DNA of 48,227 nucleotides, from contig NC_068984.1 of the NCBI RefSeq assembly GCF_001194135.2, positions 24,009,193-24,057,419 on the forward strand, written 5' to 3'. Of the stretch, positions 4,126-48,227 are shown piece after piece. Position 1 is the stretch's first letter. Each line of letters opens with the position of its first letter. The notes under the pieces were generated by a model, which saw nothing but the letters and a program-made list of their open reading frames with translations, had not been told where the DNA came from and ran no database searches. The position numbers were made by a program, and so were the translations under genes. The DNA is from Octopus bimaculoides (Eukaryota).

Positions 4126-4399
4126 CATTCAATGAAAGACTATGATGAGACGAAGGCATGTGTCAGCGTGGGTAGTAAGCTCTCTGAATACCTACTGCAA
4201 GAGGTTCCTATCGTTGCCCCATCTGTGCAGAAATGTGTAGGTCCCTAGCAAGACTGAAAAGATAGATGTGCGCGGCTGATGTTTAACACAACCATCAAAT
4301 GATGGCATTGCTAAAAATCATGTTGCAGGCATCATGTATAATGTACATACGTACGTATATGTGTGTACGTGTGTGTGTAAGTGTGTGTGAGTGTGTGTG

Positions 4400-4700
4400 C
4401 GCGTGTGGTACGTGGCTCAGGGATTAGGGCACTTGGCTTACGGTCATAAGGTCGTGAGTTCGATTCCTGGCGGAGCATTGTGTCTTCAAGCAAAACATTC
4501 AGCTGGCAAAAATGAGTTGTACCTGTAATTCAAAGGGCCAGCCCTGTTACATTCTGTGTCATGCTGAATCTCCTTGAGAATTATATTAAGGATATGCGGA
4601 CCTGTGGAGTGCGCAGTCACTTGCACGCTAATTTTACGAGCAGGCTGTTCCGTCGATTGGATCAACTGGAACACTCGTCGTCGTAAGTGACGGAGTGCCA
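4400..4700 (+). mobile_element. tRNA-derived SINE, family C
   Basis: B-box-like GAGTTCGATTCC; body homologous to 32740-33040 and, inverted, to 37537-37920. Confidence 0.85.
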
Positions 4701-12440: not shown

Positions 12441-13063
12441 GGGCGGGGAGATTCGAAGAAGACCCAGTGTAGCAAGTACACCGGGTGAGCTGTGGAACAT
12501 AAAAAGATGAACGTTTCCTAGATTTTGATTTATCGCATTGAAAAGCAGGAAAAGAAAAAAGAAAAAAAAAGAATAGATAAATAAATAAAGAAGGAAAGAG
12601 AAAAACAAAGGCAAATAAAACCTTTCAGAACAACAACAATAAGATAACTCCAACAACAGGTTCCGGTTAAATAGAAACATTTCTGTACAAGGGTAAACAT
12701 GGAGAACATTAATCATGCGGCAACAAACTGTGCAACAATCTCAGTGAATTGAGGAGACTTTAGAATGATAGATGACGCAGTTGTAATCTTTAATTTATAG
12801 CGAGCGAACAGTAATACCTAAATATGGAGTACCTTCTACAGAGGTGCCGACACACGTAGAAAGACGAGAACATACACATACATGTATAGGAACACCCACA
12901 TATACGTGCAAAAACACTCACACACACGAACATATATTAAATATAGATATTTTTGCATGCGAATGCGTATGCGTGTGGATATGTTTGTATTAGGAGGGTC
13001 TATTTTCAATAAATACCTGGTAAAAATATATATGCACCCATACTTACACGTGTGTATGCATTG

Positions 13064-16169: not shown

Positions 16170-16920
16170 AGCAACAGTCTTTGAATGCATCACTCAGACA
16201 ACACAAGTTGTACAGTAATGAAAGAAATGAGTACGATATATGCATACCCAAAAGTGAGAGCAACATCTTCACAGTACTACTATCTCATGCGACCCCAAAG
16301 AGGCTGGACTAGGCTACTTAAACAGAAGCTTGAAGAATCATACTTGCAAAATAACAAAACATGGGTACATATCCTGTTAGCTAGAGGATAGTAGCATCAT
16401 CGACAAGAAGTGTACCTCTCCTGAACCTGTGATAAATACTTTGCATCCCATCTAGAAAAATATACCTTCGCTATCCAAGAACAGAAGATAGATACCTGAT
16501 AAGCAAGAGAGAAAAAGATACCACTAAACCTCCACGTTGTGATAAAAAATGTCGGCTATGCTATACTAGTGTGGAAGATATCACTCACGTCATCAGCAGC
16601 TGCCCAAAATATCTAAGAGATTCTACCTTCTCTTGAGATTTGATATAGATACAATGCTTACCCACAGGAAGAATTGCCCTGATGGATACATCAAATACAT
16701 GTCAGAACCAGAATGTATTCCCACTTTTAAAAACAAGGAATACTTTTGGAATACTTCAATAAAAGCAGCAATTCGATGCAAACATAACAGATCTATATTG
16801 TTCTGTGGGACAAAAGTCATGCGTTATTGTAGAGATCAGCTGTCCAGCGGATGTGAATGTGCCATTAAAACTGCAGAAGAGAAGAGAACATTTATTGCAG
16901 AGCTTACGGCTTTTATACTC
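16170..16920 (+). mobile_element. R4/Dong-type RLE non-LTR retrotransposon 3' fragment
   Basis: Frameshifted motifs YTFAIQEQ, CCHC KCRLC..SVEDITHVISSC, FWNTSI..RCKHNR, IVLWDK, EISCPADVNV (restriction-like endonuclease). Confidence 0.8.
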
Positions 16921-17400
16921 TGACTACCATTTTTGTCAATGACTTGCCCTAAGTACTTAATTTGAGGCAAAAAGAATTCGCCTTTTTCTTCACACAAAGT
17001 GAACCCCCACTCCTCAATTTTATTGAACAAAGCTTTTATATACTCCACTTGCTCTTCACGCGAATTACTCTTAATCAATATGTCGTCCAAATAAGCGATT
17101 GAAAATTTACAGTCAGATAACACAACATCCATGATTTGCTGAAATATTGCTGGAGCAACTTTTAATCCAAAAGGTAACCGGGCATAGCTGCACAATCCTC
17201 AATGTGTATTTATTATCAGATACTTTGAGCATTTGCCATTTACTTAAATCTGTAAATAAGTGTCAGACAGATCCAATTTGGAGAAATTTTTTCCACCAAT
17301 TAATTTTGCGAAAATGTCCTCTGGAGTCGGGAGTGGATGGTGGCATGTCTTTAAGCAGTCATTGAATCCTGTAGAGAAATCGGCACACAGCATGAGATAC
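16920..17400 (-). mobile_element. Ty3/Gypsy reverse transcriptase fragment with in-frame stops
   Basis: CADFSTG, HPLPTPEDIFAKL, FSKLDLSD, RLPFGLKVAPAIFQQIMD, YLDD, YLGQVI. Confidence 0.92.
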
Positions 17401-27545: not shown

Positions 27546-27904
27546 TACACACACTCGTATCACATCACTTTTTTTTCAGAACAAGACATTTATACATTTC
27601 CCTTATATTTTCTTTCGCTGCCCCACTCCTGATGTCCGCCTCCTCATCTTCTTACTCTTTCCCTCGTCGTTTTCCATCATATCAACTTTGTCACATGCTA
27701 AACATTTATTTATTTATTTATTATTTACTAACTTTAAATGATAACTGATATTGATTGATCTTATTCATTTTAAAGCAAATATTTTTCTTTAAAACAAATC
27801 TAGTTATTATCTACATATATGTAGATATGCGGTTACTTAGATTTCTCAAATTATCAACATGGTTTCAACGCACTTTCAATTGATTGGTGTCAACTCTTAG
27901 AAGC

Positions 27905-27990
27905 TTAACCAATCAAAAGCAATGTAACTACCGGACTGGGCGTATTACAACCCTTATAAAGATTTAATTTCAAGTGTTTTCAGTTCGTAG
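27905..27990 (+). promoter_or_regulatory. Pol II core promoter of the secreted-peptide gene
   Basis: CCAAT 27909-13, TATAAAG 27955-61, Inr TCAGTT 27980-85 (A at 27982, 27 nt after TATA start); CCAAT and TATA conserved in the paralogous block at 46441-46490. Confidence 0.75.
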
Positions 27991-28017
27991 ACGTAATCTC
28001 AAGAGAACTAAGTTGAG
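27982..28017 (+). other. Non-coding exon 1 (5' UTR) of the secreted-peptide gene
   Basis: Starts at the Inr; ends at consensus donor GAG|GTAAGT (28018-23); no ATG. Confidence 0.65.
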
Positions 28018-28204
28018 GTAAGTGGCATTAGCTAATGGTTTGTTTAATTTTCCTCGTTGTTATTCTAAATTTTGGAAATCGTATATGAACTCAAGAATTG
28101 TTATGAAACTTTGCTGTTGTACATTTTAGCCATCTCAGAGTTATTCATTTATCCCGTTGTTAAATGTAGGCAAGTGGTTGAATCGTTATGATAACGGCTG
28201 GCAA

Positions 28205-28246
28205 AATAATAATAATAATAATAATAATAATGACGATGAGGATGAC

Positions 28247-28288
<42 letters not shown>

Positions 28289-28292
28289 GATG
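28205..28292. repeat. (AAT)n(GAT)n microsatellite
   Basis: Direct reading. Confidence 0.95.
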
Positions 28293-29656
28293 ACAACCTA
28301 GCAGTGTTTAGTTACGTCCCTTTTTGTTCTGAATTTAAATGCCACCGACGCTTTTTACTCTTTTTGGGGTTGATAAAATTAATATAGATACTAGTTATAT
28401 TTTGGAATAGATTTAATTGAATGTACCAACTAACAAAATTTATTGCCACTTGCCTATGCTAGACATAATTTATTCTATTCGGTGAGGTTTCGATCCCGAT
28501 GTTCTAACCCATTAAAACACATCAATTTCCTGTTAGTCCAGAGCTCCCACTGCAGTATTTCATACATAACAGTATTAGTGGTTGCATGAACTCATTGCAA
28601 TCGAAAGACCAATATTTGATCCAGTTCTCGAACTCTCGACAAATATATGTTTGGATATTTCGAATCTTGAGTAATATCATAATCATTAAAGTTAGTTTGT
28701 ATTTTTTCCAAGTTTCTTATTTCTTATTTATTAAAGACTATTTTCATCATTAACGTCCTTCTTGTTTATTCTACTATCATCTTACACGTTTTCCAACACC
28801 AAAACTAACATCACCACAGCCAGTAGTACCACCAACACTACCACTGCCACTACCACAAACATCTTCCTAACTCTAACTTAATTCGTGCCAGACAAGTAAT
28901 TAGTTAACCACCACACCAATCACTTAACTATCTACATTCGTGTATCATGTTTGTCGGTTAATTACTTATGTCGATTCTACTGTTTAACCTCAGAGCATGA
29001 CATAATGACATTGTACCAAGCAAAGATTATTTCACGAAGGAAACAAAAAGGAGGTGGTAGAGAAAATAGTATCCAAGGAACTGGAGGTACTCTGCGCTGT
29101 CACCGAAAACTATATACAGCATGTGAACTTATCCAAACTCATGAACTTCGCTTTGTAGATTATTTCGTACGATAGTTAATGTGTTTGAATGAAGACATAA
29201 CAACTGCTAGTAAAAAGTACGAATGATGTTAACCGTTTCAGTTCTTTGTTTCTTATCTTTGTTTTCTCGTTGACTGATATATCACATATAAATGAAAACA
29301 AGATGGTTGTCGCTCTAGCACTGTCAAAGCAAACTTAACTAATTTCATGAAGACAAACAATATATGAAAGTGGTTTTATTTCAGCTGTCACTTCTAATAG
29401 AGATTTACTCAGATTGCAAATGTATTGTTAGGAGTAGAAAATATGAATTTCAACAAGATGGAAAGCAACTTGTTTTAGTGTCAGAATTTCGATTCAGTCA
29501 AGCAAAACGGCATTAAATGTTTTGGTGTTTTATTGTTTTCTTTTTTTTTTAATAAAATAGAGACAAAAAGTATCTTAATTAGGTAAATACTAATTAAAAG
29601 TTGTCTCTCTCTACAGACAAGGATGTAAATAAAGTATTTCATAATAATTCTTTCTA

Positions 29657-29855
29657 ATTTTGACACAAGGCCATCAATTTTGAGGGGAGGGGCAAGTCGA
29701 TTACATCAACCTCAGTACTTATCGGGTACTTTATTTCATCAACTCCGAAAGGTTGAAAAGCAAAGCTGACCTCGGCAGGAATAGAAATCAGAATGTAAAG
29801 AGCCGGAAAAAATGAAAGACATTTCAACCGACGCTCTAACAATTCCGTCAGTTAA
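29657..29855 (-). mobile_element. Diverged family A SINE
   Basis: CCGAAAGGTTGAAAAGCAAAGCTGACCTCGG body, homologous to 5752-5960. Confidence 0.75.
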
Positions 29856-30491
29856 CAGGCTTCAGGTATTTCATAATAATATTCGTCATCAATAATGACT
29901 TATTACTTGTAGAGCCTTATTAGTATTAAGGCTTTAGATTAGTCTTTTAGTTATCAATCTACAGCTTTTCTTCATTAACTTCCTTCTTATTATTCTCCCA
30001 TTATCTTACACACCTTCCATCATCAGAACTAACGCTACCAACAACAACAGCAACAACAAGAACACCACCACCACCAACAACAACGCCATCATTAATAAAG
30101 AAACATAATAAGAAAAACAAAAGACAAAGAATGTACAAGTAAAGCTGCACCTACTGACTTGGTGTTTTACAACTCAACGCAAACAACAGTGTCAGGGTGA
30201 AAATGAAGATGGGTGTACCAAGGATGATGTTTGTCGAATGAAATAAGAAAATTAGTGCAATGTTTAATTTACAAGCATAGGTCAGAACATTTAATAACAA
30301 AGACCTATTGTCAGATCAATTGATCTAGCTGTGCTAATTATTTAAACTTGATGACAAAGGCTGTGTTCGTTTAATGGGATATAAAAAGTCAAAGTATTCA
30401 GCTGCTGAATTTTTATGCAAACCATTTTTTATTGTTATAATGTACATTTAATTTCCTTAATAACAACAAGTTAAAGTTGGTCTGCTCCAGA

Positions 30492-30994
30492 CACTAGCGT
30501 TGCTAGTGGGCGGTAGGGGCGGTCCGCCCCGGGCGCGAACTTTTTTCCCCACGGAAGTTTCGGGTAATGAACTTGAACTCGTTTGGATGGGGAAAATGTG
30601 GATAGAGGGTGATGTGCTAGCAACCCTCTCTCTTACCATTTTATAACGTAAACAACATCACAAATAACTAAGCAGAGGCAGCCATGGTTGAAACAAGAAC
30701 AAGAACGACAAACATTATTAAAAGAGGAAAGAAGCATGGTCATTCCTTACCCATGTGGCCTTATCTTATCGCCCATCACTTGTTATGTGCTCATAAATTA
30801 GTTTGATAGTTGAGCTTTAATTGGCTGTATGCAAATGAGATCATAACTGGAGTCCGGAACTCTCGTGGGAAAATAATTTCGCGCCCCGGGCAGTATTTTG
30901 GGGTTTGTTGTAGGCAATATGTGCTTTTGTGGGGTCCGGGGGCGGCAAATGGAATGGCCGCCCCCGGACGGCACACACTCTAGCTACGCTAGTG
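30492..30994. mobile_element. hAT-type MITE, 503 bp
   Basis: TIR CACTAGCGT(T/A)GCTAG; perfect 8-bp TSD GCTCCAGA at 30484-91 and 30995-31002. Confidence 0.92.
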
Positions 30995-31139
30995 GCTCCA
31001 GAACAAAAAGTGAAATGTTGTGACATTATATAACAAATGGGAATGTTAAACCACTTCCCACTCTATACGCACAACCAAAAACAAACATATTTGTGTATAT
31101 AATCATACATATATGTACACGTGTGTGTGTGTGTGTGAC

Positions 31140-31950
31140 ATCTTATTCGGTATCTTGTTGGTTTCTCCAAACATTGTGCATGTTTCATTGTGCTGTTCGC
31201 TATTCACGGTTCAGTCACCGTTCCAGAAAGTCAAAGACAATGACGCCTTTGTCACCGTCCAACGTAGTCACCATAACATTTTAATATTGATCTATGACTT
31301 TTGAACTTGTTAGGCCTTAGAGAAGAGGTGTAACGCCATTTCAAGGACTAAGTTTTCGCTTCCAGATCATAAAGATACATCCACGTTTCGTGCCTTGTCA
31401 CCAGATCGGAAAAATAACGTGTTTTCGTTCACTACAAACGCTTCCAGCACAGGAGAACACTTCACGTCTTCAAATCTAGTATCAGTCTTCCACCGTCTTT
31501 TGTTATGCATAATGACCACAATCCTTTTGTGCAAGAAGCTCACCGACTGTGGCTCGTCTGTCCTCGCGAATCAATTAGTCCAACCGCTAGTGACTCCTGT
31601 CACTGGTCACAGTTGATCGTCTCTCACTACGAGGTTTATCTTCATTGCTGGTTTCCCTTCCTTAAACTTCTTCATCTATGTGTGCACATTCCTCTTGTCA
31701 ATGATGTCATCTCCATAAACAACCTGCAGCCTTCAATGGATGTCTAACAGCTTGCATCCCTCCTTCGACAGGAATTCAATGACAATATGTTGCTTCCCTT
31801 CAGAACCCATTATTTTCCAGCAATAAAGAACAAGAAGACCTACTACAGAGGAAGAATTACTCAACCAAAATGTGCAATTTGAATGACCAATGTCAGTTAA
31901 TAAAAGAGCTATGCCCACTTTCGCATTATTTTCGGTACAAGCCCGTTTTC
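31140..31950 (-). mobile_element. Decayed mariner transposase fragment
   Basis: Minus frames KQHIVIEFLSKEG, LIREDRRATV, VTRHETWMYLYDLE (TGDETW..YDPE-like), KGVIVFDFLE. Confidence 0.8.
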
Positions 31951-32397
31951 GTTAAACGTTGTATCAATGTTTTTTGTTTTGTTTTTGTTCCCAGAGTCTG
32001 AGCAATGTCTTGTGGTGTATTACAAATATGCATTATTAAATTCCGTTATAATGTCTGCTAGTTCCTTACAACTTTATTTTAAGCTTTGCAGCATCCAGAT
32101 AGTAAAAGTATGACATTTTAAATGTCAGAAAGTGGGATATATTTCAACTGTCTTAACCAATTATTTCATTTTGCTTAAATCATGCAATTATATGGAATTT
32201 ACTTACAATTAAAGTTATATTAGTAAATTTATGTAGTATTGATATTTTATTGCACCCGAGCTAATCTTGTTCACCAAAATATTTGTATTTATGTTTATAT
32301 AAATGTGCTGATAAGTATATTAAAAACTAACTTTCTTTTATATTTTTAGTTAAAAATCTTCAGCATAATATATCTGCGTAAAATATTTACATACAAA

Positions 32398-32467
32398 ATG
32401 AAAGGTCATTGCATCATCGTCTTCGTCGTATTGATTGCGATATTTGCTGGAATGGCAACGGTCAGCG
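32398..32467 (+). CDS. Coding part of exon 2 (exon 32350-32467): signal peptide MKGHCIIVFVVLIAIFAGMATVS
   Basis: Branch CTAAC 32327-31, pyrimidine tract, AG 32348-49; CAAAATG start context; basic n-region and hydrophobic h-region; phase-1 donor G|GTAAGT 32468. Confidence 0.85.
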
Positions 32468-32739
32468 GTAAGTATTTGATTAATCTTATTCATGTAAATG
32501 AATCGGGGTTGCTATTCAGACCGATAAAGATGTTACCTGTTAAACAATATCATGACAAATCAAAAACAAAAAAACAAAAAAATTAGAAAGACAAAAGAAC
32601 AATAGTTTGACATTTGCTTACTGTAGCATTTTATATGAATTTTTATACATCACGAATAAATCTGGAAAACGCCTGCTATAACAATCTGAATATTCTTGTA
32701 TTTATTTTTTACATTAATTACAAGAGTTACATTAATTGT

Positions 32740-33040
32740 GAAGGCGCGTAGGATATTCGGGTCACGATCGCGAGTTCGTTTGTTAGATTCCAAGCGGCGC
32801 CTTGTGTCCTTGAGCAAGACACTTTATTTCACGTTACTCCAGCTTACTCAGCTGGCAAAAATGAGTTATACCTGTATTTCAAAGGGCCATACTTGCCACG
32901 CTGAATCTCCCTGAGAACTACATTAAGGGTACGCGTTAGTGTAGAGTTGGCTCAGCTACATGCACGTTAATTTCACGGGCAGGCTGTTCCGTCGATCAAA
33001 TCAACTGGGACCTTCATCGTCGTAACCAACAGAGTCCCAG
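32740..33040 (+). mobile_element. tRNA-derived SINE, family C
   Basis: Homologous to 4400-4700. Confidence 0.85.
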
Positions 33041-33245
33041 CTTACATTCATTTCAAGTTCGATGTTGCTAATCATTTCGAATGTTCAGTAACATATTTGA
33101 GGCCTCTAGCTGAAAACCCATTAGAACGTTATACTTCATCATACACAAGTCAGAATATAATTAAAGTAGAAAAAAAATCAGTGAAAATTCCTGAGAAAAA
33201 TGTAAGAATCTTGTAGGTAGATCTAACAAAAAGCATACCATATTC

Positions 33246-33319
<74 letters not shown>

Positions 33320-33459
33320 TTGACTTCAGTGTATTTCAATTTTGTCGTGCGTAAATATCTTTGTCGTCACGCTATTTGTACCATTTCTATTCATATTTTC
33401 AAATATATAATACTCTGCCAAGAACTTTCTATTTCTTATTCTACTACATATATATGTGT

Positions 33460-33495
<36 letters not shown>

Positions 33496-33498
33496 GTG

Positions 33499-34083
33499 TG
33501 TTAAATAAAATGAAACCCCAAAGCCAAAGTTATGTGAAAATTCTAGGACATTTATAAAGAGAAAGGTAGTCTTACAGCTGTTTCAGGGATATAAAAGATA
33601 TCCCATCATCAGAGACGATATGAGAGAGTTAGATAGAAGAAAATAGTAGAGTTCATAAGAAGTTATTTTGGAAAGGAAGAAACATAAGAAGTATACAAGG
33701 AAATAAAAGAATAAAAAAATATATTGGATGTTAAAGTTGCTGTTCCATTATCCAAGGAATGTGTTGTGTAGAATGGGTAAAGAAACTTCTTGTCCATGGT
33801 ATGTAAAAAGCTTCTTTACCCATTCTACACAGCACATTGCATGGATAATGGAACAGCAACTTTAACATCCAGCATATTTTTTTATTCTCATATTTCCTTG
33901 TATATTTTTTATATCTCTCCTTTTCCAAAATAACTTCTTATGCTGAACTTTACTTTTCCTTCTATTTAACTCTCTCATATCGTCTCTTGGGATACCTGAA
34001 ACAGCTGTAAGACTACCTTTCTCTTTATAAATGTCATAGAAATTTCATACCACCTTGGCTTTGTTGTCCCATTTTATTTAACA
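33499..34083. mobile_element. Fold-back element with ~280-bp inverted arms carrying a hammerhead (possibly Penelope-like derived)
   Basis: 33499-33788 is the reverse complement of 33808-34083, with mismatches and indels; ~19-nt spacer; flanked by (GT)n and (CA)-rich tracts. Confidence 0.85.
33569..33616 (-). ncRNA. Minimal type I hammerhead ribozyme motif
   Basis: Minus strand GTCT-CTGATGA-T-GGGATAT-CTTTT-ATATCCC-T-GAAA-CAGCTG-TA-AGAC: 4-bp stem I, 7-bp stem II, palindrome ACAGCTGT, GUA triplet. Confidence 0.8.
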
Positions 34084-34302
34084 TATACACACTCACACAC
34101 GACCCGCATTAGACTCCTCACTGATACTATTATCGAACCAAGAGTCTAATAGCGGTCCTTCCGTAGCACTTACATAACCTTACCTGCCTTTTGGGTCTTC
34201 TGGATACCAAAACATAAGCTCAATTTAATTTTGATTTTTTATAAATCGATTTTAATTGAGTTTTTACCTGTAATTTTGGATTTTGTCCCTAATATTATTA
34301 TA

Positions 34303-34333
<31 letters not shown>

Positions 34334-35392
34334 NNNNNNNNNNNNNNNNNNNNNNNNNNNNNNNNNNNNNNNNNNNNNNNNNNNNNNNNNNNNNNNNNNN
34401 NNNNNNNNNNNNNNNNNNNNNNNNNNNNNNNNNNNNNNNNNNNNNNNNNNNNNNNNNNNNNNNNNNNNNNNNNNNNNNNNNNNNNNNNNNNNNNNNNNNN
34501 NNNNNNNNNNNNNNNNNNNNNNNNNNNNNNNNNNNNNNNNNNNNNNNNNNNNNNNNNNNNNNNNNNNNNNNNNNNNNNNNNNNNNNNNNNNNNNNNNNNN
34601 NNNNNNNNNNNNNNNNNNNNNNNNNNNNNNNNNNNNNNNNNNNNNNNNNNNNNNNNNNNNNNNNNNNNNNNNNNNNNNNNNNNNNNNNNNNNNNNNNNNN
34701 NNNNNNNNNNNNNNNNNNNNNNNNNNNNNNNNNNNNNNNNNNNNNNNNNNNNNNNNNNNNNNNNNNNNNNNNNNNNNNNNNNNNNNNNNNTCTATCAGAC
34801 TTAATATGTCACACACACTCGCTCGCGCACGCGCAACGAAAGGCTTTCTCTTAGTTTCCGTCAAGCGAATTCTATTCAAGATGTCAACACAAAGTATGGT
34901 AGCAAACATTTGCCCAGTGTGCCGTGCAGTATAACAAAAGTAAATGCTATTTGCAAAGATTATCTACAAAACACTTTTTTTTTTGTTTTTGCAACAAATG
35001 TGAAATTTTCTTCTTCCTGACATTTCTTCATTTTCTTTTCTCTTTCGCCAACCGTTACAATTGATATTTGCTTCAATATTCATCAGTTTGTCGTGTTCTG
35101 AGTTCTGATACATTAATGAATGCGTAAGTGAATACATATGTATGGTTGCCTATCGAACTACTTTCTTACATATACCTGCACCTATTTGGAAAACGAATTA
35201 TCTCTAACACTGTGCTTGAAGTAATACATACCTATATATCCAACCTATCGTGAAGTGTAACTACTAAACAAAGTAACAAAATAAAACTGAATTAGAACTA
35301 ACGCACTCACACTTACACATGCATCAGAAGGTGCAATGTTATAACTAATATAAGGGCAATGTTATAACATAAGTGCCATGTTATAACTAACA

Positions 35393-35908
35393 TAGGTGCA
35401 GGAATGACTGTGTGGTAAGGGGTTATCGGTCGGCGGGCGCTGGTACCCCTCCCATTACTATTTCATCTGTGTTGTTATCACCTTCATCCCATTAATGTCT
35501 GCGTCCAGCCCGCAGCTACTTTATGTTTGTCTGTCCTTGTTCGTCCCCTCTTTCTAAGGCCTTAATGGCCAAATTGTTGAAATAAAGTAGCTTGCTTACC
35601 AACCACATGGTTCCGGGTTCAGTCCCACTGCGTGGCACTTTGGGCAAGTGTCTTCTACTATAACATCGGGCCGACCAAAGCCTTGTGAGTGGATTTGGTA
35701 GACGGAAACTGAAAGANNNNNNNNNNCTTGACAACCGATGCTGGTGTGTTTACGTCCCCGTAACTTAGCATTTCGGCAAAAGAGACCGATAGAATAAGTA
35801 CTAGGCTTACAAAGAATAAGTCCTGGGGTCGATTTGCTCGACGAAAGGCGGTGCTCCAGCATGGCCGCAATCAAATGACTGAAACAAGTAAAAGAGTAAA
35901 AGAGAGTA
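35393..35908 (+). mobile_element. Family D SINE with a ~168-bp insertion in its head
   Basis: Head GGTGCAGGAATGACTGTGTGGTAAG (to 35419) resumes at TAGCTTGCTTACC (35588); contiguous in the 9893-10270 copy. Confidence 0.85.
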
Positions 35909-36040
35909 TAATACTGTAGAACCGCAACTGCAGTACTATTTTCTTATTTAGTTAACAACTATATCTATTCCACTATATCTAATTTAAAAACAATATCAAC
36001 GCCAATGCAGTTCTAATATTTAAATATTTTCTAATTGCAG

Positions 36041-36183
36041 CCCGTCCTTCAATCATACTTCCACCAGAGTGTGGAAATGCCTGTTTAGCACATTATGAAT
36101 CAAATCCTAATGAAAGCCGTTCAGTTTCAAAATACATAGGATGCATCAGAAAATGCTGGGAAAAAGCTCGATTTAATAATTGA
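36041..36183 (+). CDS. Coding part of exon 3: mature 46-aa four-cysteine peptide (A)RPSIILPPECGNACLAHYESNPNESRSVSKYIGCIRKCWEKARFNN*
   Basis: Acceptor TTTTCTAATTGCAG|36041; phase 1 completes Ala24 (V-S-A peptidase site); open to TGA 36181-83; CX3C-X19-CX3C. Confidence 0.85.
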
Positions 36184-36397
36184 AAACGTTGTTTGAGAAT
36201 ACAATTGAAGAATCGAGTTGGAGCATCATGTTAATGTAGACGTGTCCAGTTCTTGAAATGAAAATACAAAGAATCTCTTACAATTATTGCATGCTTCTAC
36301 ATTTTCTACAGTTTTTTTTTTTGGTCTGCTTAAATCTACATGATAATTATGAAAGGAATATAGTTTTTTGTGAAAGCAATTGATGTACTTTAATGAA

Positions 36398-36403
36398 AAT
36401 AAA
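36398..36403 (+). terminator. Putative polyadenylation signal of the peptide gene
   Basis: AATAAA 215 nt after the stop, followed by a GT/T-rich tract at ~36421-36431. Confidence 0.55.
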
Positions 36404-36849
36404 ACATTTTAAAATATTTAATATGTGGTTTAAAATTATTCAACAGAGAAGTTGTAATACATTTCTTAAATGATTCTATTTATTCTCAGGTAAGCTACTA
36501 TCCTCAACATTTATAATCAAAGACGCCCCTACCTTGACCATCCCATGTATAACTAGAGCTACATTATCCAGTTGTTCCTTATATAATACCTATGATGTAA
36601 TTTGATGGCGATTTTACTGGTTGGGATTTTTCAGTCGAATGAAATCGTAGACTACTTTATTTGACCATGTAAAAGATTGATAGTTGCAATAGAGACATTA
36701 ATCTCTCTCTATTACCTTTCAACAAAATGATATATTAAGAAACAGTAGAACAATTAACAACATAATAAAAATAAGTTTTATTTTTGGTGATGCTTAGTTT
36801 TACAAATCCTGTGTCATTCAGCTTAGCAGCCGCTGGTTAACTTGTTATC

Positions 36850-42575: not shown

Positions 42576-43266
42576 CCTTCGTAACACAGTGTAGGCAAAA
42601 ATGCACCGGAGTCTTTAGTCATCTGTCAAGTCACAACAAGGACCTCAGACTGATAATACTTTCCTTAAGATGTGCGCTGTGCCCAATAAAGCTGCTTTTT
42701 GCAAGACATCAATCTTGCATGGGATTTCCAGTGGGCCTTAAGAAGTCTTGAAGCTTCAATGAGACTGAGACCAACGCTCCGATCACCACTGGTATCACTT
42801 TTACATTACCCTCTCGTATTACATACTGTCTTGTCATTTCTACTTTCAATTCAGAGTATTTGGTGATTTTTTTCAACCTTTTTACTCACAGCATTCATGT
42901 CATTTAGTATGGCTACATCAATGATCTGACAGTATTTGTCTCTCTTATTCAATTTGACAATATCTGGCCAATGGTGTTCGATTACACGATCCATCTGAAA
43001 ATCATAGTCCCAGAGTATCGTTACTTTTCCATCCTCCTGCTTAACTTTACTTGGTACATGCTCATACCAGTTCTCTGTTACTTCATATTGGTATTTACAA
43101 CATAAGAGCCAATGAAGATACGTACACATTTTATCGTGGAGGCGTTTGTATTCTTTTTGTGCAAGGCTCCCACATCCACTTACCAAGTAGACCACATTTT
43201 CCACACTCTTTCCACAGAGTCTGCATTTCTTGGTGTCAGAAGTTTTATAGATGTTATACTTCACTG
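42576..43266 (-). mobile_element. R4/Dong-type LINE 3' part (CCHC plus restriction-like endonuclease)
   Basis: KCRLCGKSVENVVYLVSGC..LAQKEYKRLHD, ILWDYDFQMDRVIEHHWPDIV, IIDVA; (AAT)4 at the 3' end. Confidence 0.92.
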
Positions 43267-43267
43267 A

Positions 43268-43299
<32 letters not shown>

Positions 43300-43669
43300 C
43301 ATCATCATAATCATTATCATCCTCGTTATTATTNNNNNNNNNNNNNNNNNNNNNNNNNNNNNNNNNNNNNNNNNNNNNNNNNNNNNNNNNNNNNNNNNNN
43401 NNNNNNNNNNNNNNNNNNNNNNNNNNNNNNNNNNNNNNNNNNNNNNNNNNNNNNNNNNNNNNNNNNNNNNNNNNNNNNNNNNNNNNNNNNNNNNNNNNNN
43501 NNNNNNNNNNNNNNNNNNNNNNNNNNNNNNNNNNNNNNNNNNNNNNNNNNNNNNNNNNNNNNNNNNNNNNNNNNNNNNNNNNNNNNNNNNNNNNNNNNNN
43601 NNNNNNNNNNNNNNNNNNNNNNNNNNNNNNNNNNNNNNNNNNNNNNNNNNNNNNNNNNNNNNNNNNNNC

Positions 43670-44682
43670 TGTAACATGTGGGATGGATCTATCGGCCGAG
43701 TTCATAGTGATGATTTCCCCTCCGCCATCCTTTAATCGGGCAGGTGAGGCAGTTTTCCTTTGCCTTGTGGCTGTGGTGAAGGAGGTTATCTGGTGGACGA
43801 GGTTGAAAAGCATGAGAACAGATACACTTGCTAATCAGTCAGGTATTTTAATAGGATCTCCCATGATTTAATTGAACAGCCGAACTAATTTTTCGTGTGT
43901 GCACGGGAGAGAAGAGAGCCTGAAATCTGGCACCCTGTCTTTACTAAATGATTTCCACTTACGAGCCTTTGTGATGATCTTCCTTAGGCCTGCTATTGTG
44001 ATGTCTTGCCATGGTTGTTCTTGTAAATGTTGATAGGAGCCTTTTGTGCGTCTAACCCAATCTGCATTTTCATTGTATGTCTTATCAGTCCAAATGTTTT
44101 CCAAAAGTTTTCAGTTTCTTCCATTGGAGGGAGATCTTTAATGGTTATTTTTTTCTCCTTTCCTATTTCCCTGCAAAATGTTTTTACATTGGATGTCAAC
44201 AGCTTATTTTGCTGGTAAAAATTATTTCGTTTCTCAAATCTTTGTATTTTTTTAGCTTTTACTTGGACTTTTCGTTTCAATGTTTCTTTTGTTGATATAA
44301 GTTCTTCTCCTGATGAAAATCCATATTTTATCTTCCTCTTTCTTCCTTTTCTGAACCTTACATCATTTCCCAGATTGGTTCATCTAATATTGATATTCCC
44401 CCTCTCATTAAGTGAATCTCTTTTTCAATTTTACTTGTTTGAATTTCATCCAAGGTTTGGTTTTCTTCGTTTTTCGCTGGTATACAACTTGTTTCAATTG
44501 CCTTAGCAGATGCATAAATAATTCTATTTAACTCAGTAAGATCAGGTCTTAATTCTTGTATAATTTCTTTTGTTACATAACTGCCAATTTTTATATTTTT
44601 TTTAATTATTTTAGTTTGTATTTGAGAGTTTGTGAAGTGGTTCTCCATCATTCATACTTGTATGTCTTACAGCTGCAAACTC

Positions 44683-44685
<3 letters not shown>
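43670..44685 (-). mobile_element. R4/Dong-type LINE 5' ORF part through early RT
   Basis: ELNRIIYASAKAI, ENIW...YNENADWV, DITIAGLRKIITKARKWKS...HEKLVRLFN; frameshifted. Confidence 0.8.
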
Positions 44686-44718
<33 letters not shown>

Positions 44719-45012
44719 CATTATTATTATTACTATTATTACTATTATTATTATTGAACAAACGTCCATATCAGAGATCACATGAAAAAATAATTAACCG
44801 GATTACATAATGTTAAACAGGTTTTGATGCAAAAAGGAGTCATTCACCAATAAAAGGCTTCAGAATATTTGAACATCTTCCTCATTACACTGCCTGGAGT
44901 AGAAAAACAGATTCTTCGAAACAACATCTTTTTAACCGTATATATATATATATATANNNNNNNNNNNNNNNNNNNNNNNNNNNNNNNNNNNNNNNNNNNN
45001 NNNNNNNNNNNN

Positions 45013-45051
<39 letters not shown>

Positions 45052-45825
45052 CATATATATGTATATATATGTGTGTGTATGTATGTATGTATGTACATAT
45101 ATTGTACAGCTGCTATTTGTATTGCTATTGGTGGCTCAAATGGCCTCAAGGTGAGAGGAAGATGTTTATTTTAAAGTGATAGTGGCTGTAACCACAATAT
45201 TGTAAATAATCACGTACCCTAAGTATTTTTACATACGAAAAGGGATTAACAAAAATAGACAATATAAAAATTAAACAGACTAAGTTTGATGTTACACAGT
45301 AGAAAACAGAAAAAAAAATAGAGTGTATTGAGAACAGTAATTTAAATGAGAAAATGTATAAACAGCATGAAAAACAACGACATCACCTCCAAAAGCAACA
45401 GCACTTCATCCTTTCCAAACCTTATGAGTCATAAAGAGCTTTTCAATATGAACCAGCAATATTTACCCTGGGTAAATTACTGGAGTAAGGAATCAAGTCA
45501 CTTATGTCTTTTACTCTTGACTTAATTTCCAGTGAATGAAATATCTAATAGAAACACTGGAAGCTGAAACAATGACGTTAATTATTTCTTCCCAAAATTG
45601 ACATATTCAACACTTAATGAGTTCTGTTCCATTGCATGATTTTGGTTGTATCTGGTGGGAAGTCTTTGATCCTGTGCCGCAACAAAAATCTTTAACTTTC
45701 AACTTTGTGTTCTTCGCCACTTAGCCAATGCTGTGATTTTTTGTCACCCATCTCCACCATGTGCGCCTATATAAAAAGCTACGCAACAGTATGCAAAATT
45801 CAATTGCTCAAACTGTGCCGTAAAT

Positions 45826-46495: not shown

Positions 46496-46728
46496 TCTTT
46501 TACTTGTTTCAGTCATTTGACCGTGGCCATGCTGGAGCACCGTCTTTAGTCGAATCAAATCGACCCCAGGACTTATTCTTTGTAAGCCTAGTACTTATTC
46601 CATCGGTCTCTTTTTGCAGAACCGCTAGGTTACGGGGACCTAAACACACCAGCATCGGTTGTCAAGTGATGTTGGGGGGGACAAACACAGATACACAACA
46701 TATATACACATACATATATATATATATA
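46495..46728 (-). mobile_element. Family D SINE, truncated by a gap
   Basis: TTCTTTTACTTGTTTCAGTCATTTGAC.. matches 9893 onward. Confidence 0.9.
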
Positions 46729-47589
46729 NNNNNNNNNNNNNNNNNNNNNNNNNNNNNNNNNNNNNNNNNNNNNNNNNNNNNNNNNNNNNNNNNNNNNNNN
46801 NNNNNNNNNNNNNNNNNNNNNNNNNNNNNNNNNNNNNNNNNNNNNNNNNNNNNNNNNNNNNNNNNNNNNNNNNNNNNNNNNNNNNNNNNNNNNNNNNNNN
46901 NNNNNNNNNNNNNNNNNNNNNNNNNNNNNNNNNNNNNNNNNNNNNNNNNNNNNNNNNNNNNNNNNNNNNNNNNNNNNNNNNNNNNNNNNNNNNNNNNNNN
47001 NNNNNNNNNNNNNNNNNNNNNNNNNNNNNNNNNNNNNNNNNNNNNNNNNNNNNNNNNNNNNNNNNNNNNNNNNNNNNNNNNNNNNNNNNNNNNNNNNNNN
47101 NNNNNNNNNNNNNNNNNNNNNNNNNNNNNNNNNNNNNNNNNNNNNNNNNNNNNNNNNNNNNNNNNNNNNNNNNNNNNNNNNNNNNNNNNNNNNNNNNNNN
47201 NNNNNNNNNNNNNNNNNNNNNNNNNNNNNNNNNNNNNNNNNNNNNNNNNNNNNNNNNNNNNNNNNNNNNNNNNNNNNNNNNNNNNNNNNNNNNNNNNNNN
47301 NNNNNNNNNNNNNNNNNNNNNNNNNNNNNNNNNNNNNNNNNNNNNNNNNNNNNNNNNNNNNNNNNNNNNNNNNNNNNNNNNNNNNNNNNNNNNNNNNNNN
47401 NNNNNNNNNNNNNNNNNNNNNNNNNNNNNNNNNNNNNNNNNNNNNNNNNNNNNNNNNNNNNNNNNNNNNNNNNNNNNNNNNNNNNNNNNNNNNNNNNNNN
47501 NNNNNNNNNNNNNNNNNNNNNNNNNNNNNNNNNNNNNNNNNNNNNNNNNNNNNNNNNNNNNNNNNNNNNNNNNNNNNNNNNNNNNNNNN

Positions 47590-48227
47590 CAGACACCTGC
47601 AGAGGCCAGTCCGGATCCTTAATACAGGTGAGGACTCCCTCTCTCTGACGCTTCCTTTTATTCACAAATTTCTGCAGGGCCCCTCCCTTTCGGAATAGGA
47701 TTAGCCGATCCTTTTCCTCACCGGGTGAGCCCACAGCTTCTACTGTCGGCAGTACAATTCCCGCCGACCTGCTTTCCTCCGTTGGTGGCACAATTCCCAC
47801 CAACGGAGTGTCGGGACACGCCGGCGATGCACTATCGAGCACCGGCCGTGCCTCGTTCTTTTTTTTCTTTTTCTTTGAGGCCACTGGAGTAGGGCGTACT
47901 TCCGCCTTAGCCAAAAGGTCCTCCTCCTCGCCCACAACTTTCGGTGAGCAACCATTGTTGCCCANNNNNNNNNNGTATGTGGGAAGAAACAGAATTTTTT
48001 GCCCTTCTAAGGGCTGGCTCGCAAGCTTGCGAGCCACCTCAGTGGTGTCAAATAGCAACCAAACCGTTGCGTACTTTACACCCCTTGCCATAAACTTAAT
48101 AGTTGGCAGATATTCTGCTAACTCTTTTTCAATTTCAATTTTGGGAAAGACCGTAATGGTATCGAGTAACCTAGAGTAGGTCCGCAACACCACCGTTCTT
48201 TCCCTGAAATCATTTAATCACTTCTTG
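47590..48227 (-). mobile_element. Probable non-LTR retrotransposon ORF1 fragment (RRM-like region then K/P-rich low complexity)
   Basis: Open frame RERTVVLRTYSR..FPKIEIEKELAEYL..GVKYATVWLLFDTTEVARKL, GC-rich. Family not determinable by eye. Confidence 0.5.

Follow-up and report, generated by a model that had tools for sequence, protein, structure and literature searches.

We analysed a 48,227-nt stretch of the Octopus bimaculoides contig NC_068984.1 (hereafter the window, with coordinates counted from its first letter), in which the sequence, read directly and spliced by script, lays out a three-exon gene model for a small secreted peptide. A first-pass annotation of this DNA had proposed a promoter, three exons, a phase-1 split, a signal peptide, a mature peptide and an AATAAA signal, and all of these were recovered at the same positions when the sequence was reread and spliced. 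On balance, we judge this to be probably a real gene encoding a secreted, disulfide-stapled helical hairpin. It is probably single-copy and, as far as sequence comparisons reach, restricted to Octopus, and we regard it as a new family of sequences built on a known scaffold, of which one orthologue, still uncharacterised, has been deposited.

All parts of the model lie on the + strand. The putative core promoter (27883–27981) holds an inverted CCAAT box (ATTGG, 27883–27887), a CCAAT box (27909–27913) and a TATAAA box (27955–27960), the last of these ~ 25 nt 5′ of the presumed start site. Exon 1 (27982–28017, 36 nt) is a non-coding part of the 5′ untranslated region (UTR); its 5′ end is the presumed start and its 3′ end is fixed by the donor GAG/GTAAGT. 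Intron 1 (28018–32349, 4.3 kb) runs from GTAAGT to TTTTATATTTTTAG and holds an (AAT)n(GAT)n trinucleotide microsatellite at 28205–28290; the corresponding locus of Octopus vulgaris has a long A/T-rich trinucleotide tract at the matching place (locus ~ 4300–4450). Exon 2 (32350–32467), which follows TTTTATATTTTTAG, comprises 48 nt of 5′ UTR, an ATG at 32398 that is the sole ATG of the spliced 5′ region, and the signal peptide, and ends at a second GTAAGT donor. Its coding part spans 23.3 codons, MKGHCIIVFVVLIAIFAGMATVS(A), with the donor after the first base of codon 24, i.e., in phase 1. Intron 2 (32468–36040, 3.6 kb as assembled) holds two assembly gaps and an insertion resembling a short interspersed nuclear element (SINE).

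The coding part of exon 3 (36041–36183) is preceded by TTCTAATTGCAG; it completes Ala24 and encodes the mature peptide (36043–36180) and the TGA stop (36181–36183). Four Cys codons were read in it, at 36070–36072, 36082–36084, 36142–36144 and 36154–36156, and an N-E-S sequon at 36109–36117. A possible alternative acceptor lies just upstream (36008–36040), where a CAG at 36008–36010 would start the exon at 36011, leave the frame unchanged and insert VLIFKYFLIA; this acceptor is 100% conserved in O. vulgaris, yet the gene model of that species does not use it. The 3′ UTR (36184–36420) includes the AATAAA at 36398–36403, with cleavage expected at ~ 36420. Just 3′ of the poly(A) signal, the segment 36421–36667 is 94.7% identical to O. 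vulgaris and carries a conserved CAG/GTAAGC at ~ 36488.

The spliced open reading frame (ORF), MKGHCIIVFVVLIAIFAGMATVSA joined to RPSIILPPECGNACLAHYESNPNESRSVSKYIGCIRKCWEKARFNN, is 70 aa long with cysteines at positions 5, 34, 38, 58 and 62, those of the mature part being spaced CX3C-X19-CX3C. As read from the sequence, the putative signal peptide has a K2 n-region, a 16-residue hydrophobic core and V-S-A at positions − 3 to − 1, and the mature peptide has 46 aa, a mass of 5.25 kDa, an isoelectric point of 8.9 and a net charge of ~ + 3. We propose that the TATA/CCAAT promoter would drive transcription of a short mRNA, ~ 530 nt once spliced, and that the 70-aa precursor would enter the endoplasmic reticulum via a cleavable 24-residue signal peptide, presumably cut after V-S-A; with no pro-region, this would leave a 46-aa cationic peptide. 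The peptide would then adopt an antiparallel helix-loop-helix stapled by putative Cys34–Cys62 and Cys38–Cys58 bonds, might be N-glycosylated at Asn47 in the loop, and would be released as a stable extracellular molecule.

Structure prediction is in keeping with this proposal. AlphaFold2 folds the mature peptide (two-row alignment) into helices at residues 8–20 and 28–44 around a loop, with a mean predicted local distance difference test (pLDDT) score of 80, and gives a helix-loop-helix at pLDDT 78–80 across both orthologues. For the O. vulgaris precursor alone, it models a signal helix at residues 4–23, a low-confidence linker, and helices at 31–43 and 51–67 with pLDDT 85–88. The helical hairpin proposed in the first-pass annotation is thus what the models predict, with a CX3C pair on each helix. 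In these models Cys38 and Cys58 each lie 6 residues, and Cys34 and Cys62 each 10 residues, from the loop-side helix ends, a symmetric placement which fits C1–C4 and C2–C3 staples. Searched against the PDB with Foldseek, the model had no significant match; the second-ranked entry was a chain of walnut Jug r 2, 38 residues long (template modelling scores 0.52/0.59, E-value 10, not significant), which we take to be a vicilin-buried peptide of alpha-hairpinin type.

The same N-terminus could also be read as an uncleaved signal anchor, in which case the product would be a very small type II membrane protein whose CX3C hairpin faces the lumen or the outside of the cell. Its hydrophobic run of 16–17 residues is long for a signal peptide, and AlphaFold2 models residues 4–23 as one unbroken helix. 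However, the run is shorter than a typical membrane span of 19–23 residues, and the small residues of V-S-A at − 1 and − 3, the polar, helix-breaking c-region and the R-P-S after the site all speak for cleavage; we consider a membrane-anchored product very unlikely.

A word-indexed search of 5.8 billion proteins returned one match, a 69-aa ‘hypothetical predicted protein’ of O. vulgaris (CAI9720819.1; UniProt A0AA36ARJ6_OCTVU) encoded on OX597817.1 (GCA_951406725.2), with an E-value of 3.9e-35, 90% identity and 99% coverage. Its two coding exons, their phase-1 split at codon 24, the Cys pattern and the loop sequon all agree with those of the window gene; the flanks are colinear over ~ 20 kb between the window and the O. 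vulgaris locus, and the splice positions are identical. By these sequence comparisons CAI9720819.1 is the orthologue of the window gene. It differs by the deletion of Pro26, which leaves it one residue shorter, by seven substitutions, and by an intron 2 of 2.7 kb that has no SINE-like insertion. It is itself uncharacterised and so gives the window peptide no name. No other gene is called within 10 kb on either side of it. The joining of exon 2 to exon 3 put forward in the first-pass annotation is reproduced independently by the O. vulgaris genome annotation, for which Iso-Seq and RNA-seq assemblies, protein alignments and Augustus and GeneMark predictions were merged by EVidenceModeler (PMC10700109). 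The gene had also been described as unannotated; this holds for O. bimaculoides, whose exact 70-aa protein is absent from a collection of 15 billion proteins, but not for the orthologue, which was already deposited as CAI9720819.1.

Beyond this protein, an exhaustive HMMER scan of 1.84 billion representative proteins found no relative. No paralogue was detected by tblastn with the precursor, signal and mature parts in the window or in the 22.9-kb O. vulgaris locus. In Pfam nothing rose above noise, including the T-superfamily signal region (E-value 0.15, 12.8 bits against a cut-off of 27 bits), and a link to T-superfamily conotoxin signals was rejected at that score; a sequence search of the PDB gave no match. 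The first-pass annotation had not recognised the peptide as a named family, and this agrees with the homology searches, in which no named family was matched in Pfam, PDB sequences, the 1.84 billion proteins or Foldseek. In the literature, the peptide string occurs in no paper and is absent from the supplements of an O. vulgaris salivary-gland antimicrobial peptide study, and searches on octopus helical hairpin, CX3C or cysteine-rich salivary peptides returned nothing relevant.

The window contains 16 runs of N in 48 kb, and the gaps whose flanks were read adjoin microsatellites of (TA)n, (CA)n or (TC)n type. Both gaps in intron 2 (34334–34790, 457 N; 35717–35726, 10 N) touch no exon. The larger comes after a (TA)n run, in a stretch of the middle of the intron that is rich in repeats and for which no alignment between the two species could be made; colinear blocks bracket this stretch (33381 with O. 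vulgaris locus 11105; 35196 with 12406) in the same order and orientation. The smaller lies inside a ~ 557-bp insertion (35351–35907) with a SINE-like core at 35585–35906. O. vulgaris lacks this insertion: locus positions 12565 and 12568 are adjacent at the orthologous site. At least three copies of the core occur elsewhere in the 22.9-kb O. vulgaris locus at 93–97% identity, other copies carry ~ 65 bp where the window has 10 N, and neither ARAGORN nor Rfam recognises the repeat. The O. vulgaris intron 2 is 2,677 bp long, gapless and annotated as one intron joining the same two coding exons, so the peptide reading frame is independent of the unread letters. We rejected the idea of a coding exon concealed by the gaps, since in O. 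vulgaris a complete ORF is formed by two exons around an intron that has no gap.

The alignable DNA of the two octopuses is 90.7% identical, i.e., the species are ~ 9% diverged. The coding part of exon 2 matches at 63 of 70 positions (90%) and that of exon 3 at 133 of 143 (93%), with one in-frame 3-bp indel, while the UTR parts are identical at 48 of 48 positions in exon 2, at 35 of 36 in exon 1 and at 94% in the 3′ UTR. Identity reaches at least 97% in 22 blocks, four of which cover parts of the gene: promoter and exon 1 (27882–28101), exon 2 (32302–32421), exon 3 (36012–36161) and the poly(A) region (36302–36471). All three promoter boxes, both donors, both acceptors and the AATAAA are unchanged in O. 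vulgaris, and the ORF, ATG, stop and all Cys are retained. Helix 1 is coded by 69 identical nucleotides in both species, and the substitution S49T keeps the N-E-S/T glycosylation sequon in the loop. Changes in the coding sequence (CDS) amount to 6 synonymous and 8 non-synonymous substitutions and one in-frame codon deletion, with a ratio of non-synonymous to synonymous rates (dN/dS) of 0.34.

The last 44 nt before the exon 2 acceptor are 100% conserved, and the stretch preceding them is ~ 82% identical. A rival TATA motif, TATATAAA, lies at ~ 32297 (within 32290–32305), ~ 50 nt 5′ of exon 2, and is removed by a 14-bp deletion in O. vulgaris. The deletion of this decoy favours the upstream promoter and exon 1, and a promoter directly upstream of exon 2 was rejected because its TATA is lost in that species.

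How readily such an arrangement arises by chance was examined in the window and in simulations. When both strands of the 48-kb window were filtered for ATG exons that satisfy simple signal-peptide criteria and end at a consensus donor, exon 2 alone passed. Simulating the window 200 times with a third-order Markov model yielded 0.105 such exons per window, and in none of the 200 simulated windows did one have an in-phase partner giving a four-Cys twin-CX3C ORF. GTAAGT occurs ten times on the + strand of the window, and two of these are the proposed donors. Within 9 kb, 22 in-phase YAG acceptors would each open an ORF of 30 aa or more, and the one at 36011 is in the same frame, so sequence alone leaves the choice of acceptor unfixed. 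In simulated neutral drift (6.6–9.3%), the ORF, four Cys and splice dinucleotides survived in 7–16% of trials, and neutral retention falls to ~ 0.02–0.05 when ~ 1/3 for the in-frame indel is included.

These figures bear on a reading in which the locus is not a functional coding gene but a chance ORF, or yields a transcript that is non-coding or goes untranslated, with the O. vulgaris model reflecting an ab initio prediction from the shared, inherited DNA. Several points weigh on that side and against a real gene. The CDS is 90–93% identical against a background of 90.7%, its exons are no more identical than many non-coding blocks, and the genomes are too close for conservation to discriminate; dN/dS, drawn from 14 substitutions, is not significant, and a neutral retention of all features at the value above is not negligible. 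The exon 3 acceptor has a modest pyrimidine tract, and 30 nt 5′ of it is another acceptor in the same frame. Chance alone could produce a few such arrangements in a genome of ~ 2.3 Gb. The searches of 5.8 billion and 1.84 billion proteins found no homologue in any other annotated cephalopod, leaving one congeneric species, and no transcriptome-derived contig of the collection contains the exact proteins. The O. vulgaris model may itself be ab initio only: TransDecoder by default keeps ORFs of at least 100 aa, so the 69-aa CDS may lack a transcript origin. On the other side stand the absence of the feature combination from all 200 simulated windows, GTAAGT at both donors, and the exact conservation of promoter boxes, acceptors and AATAAA while the decoy TATA by exon 2 was deleted. 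The indel is in frame, the serine-to-threonine change preserves the sequon, and from single sequences AlphaFold2 predicts, with confidence, a compact fold of a kind not usually obtained for random ORFs. Conservation is thus suggestive but weakly informative as evidence for coding or selection, and taking all of this together we hold the non-coding reading to be improbable, though well short of far-fetched, and continue to favour a real gene for a secreted hairpin.

As to what such a peptide would do, the first-pass annotation had suggested a candidate venom, antimicrobial or pheromone peptide. We tentatively propose an effector that binds a surface outside the cell, either a microbial or prey membrane or an ion channel, and acts as a host-defence or secretory-gland peptide. 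An effector is preferred over a classical neuropeptide because the signal stands directly before the mature peptide, there are no usable dibasic or amidation signals, helix 2 is basic and amphipathic, and the promoter is of TATA type. A different function for the same secreted hairpin is that of a signalling molecule acting on a receptor, i.e., a hormone, a neuropeptide-like factor, or a reproductive or chemosensory pheromone. Taken by itself we think this unlikely, yet a signalling or pheromone role is nearly as defensible as the effector role. All of the structural evidence is common to both, and the conserved loop sequon and fully conserved helix 1 would suit a specific binding surface. Furthermore, lineage-specific genes of octopods are reported to be expressed mainly in nervous tissue, and genes of octopod age in male reproductive tissue (PMC7656900). 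However, the searches found no similarity to known peptide-hormone families, and the precursor lacks a pro-region. Classical neuropeptide precursors have flanking mono- or dibasic sites and often a C-terminal Gly, whereas no such sites flank the octopus peptide; its sole RK (KK in O. vulgaris) sits inside the second CX3C, and its C-terminus reads ...RFNN (...RFNP in O. vulgaris).

No other credible gene came to light in the window, and scanning it with Rfam and for tRNAs gave no hit. A reverse-transcriptase fragment (RVT_1, Pfam, E-value 4.5e-18) at 16836–17195 on the − strand marks a retrotransposon remnant; a 96-aa + strand ORF overlapping it had no match. Long, gap-broken ORFs on the − strand at 42851–43813, 43993–44651 and 46640–48193 have no Pfam match and look like decayed remnants of transposons of the long interspersed nuclear element type. 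Part of this region, at 43906–45741, aligns to the O. vulgaris locus.

If expressed, the gene would add a cephalopod example to the few animal peptides with a two-disulfide helical hairpin, a scaffold on which ion-channel blockers and antimicrobials are modelled. It would further illustrate neatly how standard annotation misses a short secreted gene confined to one lineage, here because a 3.6-kb intron interrupts the 213-nt ORF. At present it is one of many orphan genes for small peptides, and a sister species already has it as an unnamed model; its value lies in follow-up, for which it would be a concrete candidate in octopus salivary gland, skin, sucker, nervous and reproductive transcriptomes.

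Among known proteins with two CX3C motifs on antiparallel helices are the mitochondrial small Tims, and the twin motif alone would suit an intracellular protein of this type. Small Tims are made in the cytosol, have no signal peptide and are spaced differently, with 11–16 residues between the motifs, shorter than the 19 of the octopus peptide. The Pfam small-Tim model (zf-Tim10_DDP) gave no match at E ≤ 10, nor was another model matched, and a protein with such a hydrophobic signal at its N-terminus would not be imported into the intermembrane space. The missing profile match and the signal peptide effectively refute a small-Tim identity, which we regard as extremely improbable.

The first-pass annotation had taken CX3C...CX3C as a mark of plant alpha-hairpinins, scorpion kappa-KTx (kappa-hefutoxin) and some framework XIV conotoxins, and this is borne out by the literature, in which the motif is shared by kappa-hefutoxins, OmTx and Conus flf14/vil14a, and alpha-hairpinins are defined by XnC1X3C2XnC3X3C4Xn with a helix-loop-helix fold (PMC7191063). 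The octopus peptide, C34-X3-C38-X19-C58-X3-C62, shares this Cys motif with the alpha-hairpinins (EcAMP1, MBP-1, Tk-AMP-X, vicilin-buried peptides) and is predicted to share their fold, and both are cationic and of similar size. However, alpha-hairpinins come from plants, where modular or vicilin precursors are cleaved to release them, and their loops between the Cys pairs are shorter. Pfam, PDB sequences and the 1.84 billion proteins gave no sequence relation that would indicate descent from them; the likeness would be convergent rather than due to common descent.

The scorpion kappa-KTx peptides (kappa-hefutoxins, OmTx) and Conus framework XIV peptides (flf14a-c, vil14a) have the same Cys motif and are secreted animal peptides, those of Conus also being molluscan. 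They are reported to have C1–C4/C2–C3 connectivity, 22–27 residues and short loops (PMC7191063), whereas the octopus peptide, with 46 residues and an X19 spacer, is about twice their length, and its PDB sequence search matched no solved member of either group. Kappa-KTx peptides block Kv channels through a functional Tyr/Lys dyad; the octopus sequence has a K54-Y55 pair as well as further Lys and aromatic residues. A pro-region is present in conotoxin precursors, in contrast to the octopus precursor, where the signal is followed directly by the mature peptide. On sequence grounds, then, the octopus peptide resembles the hairpin families in architecture only and is a member of none. A bolder reading, which we put forward as speculative and consider unlikely, makes it the founding member of a cephalopod-born stapled-hairpin family, possibly arisen de novo in Octopus, and serving as a salivary venom component aimed at ion channels or as a reproductive or chemotactile pheromone. 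The distinctive trait of such a family would be the unusually long, glycosylatable 19-residue loop. If this is true, the scaffold would have been invented independently for a third time in animals, the other two cases being scorpion kappa-KTx and Conus framework XIV.

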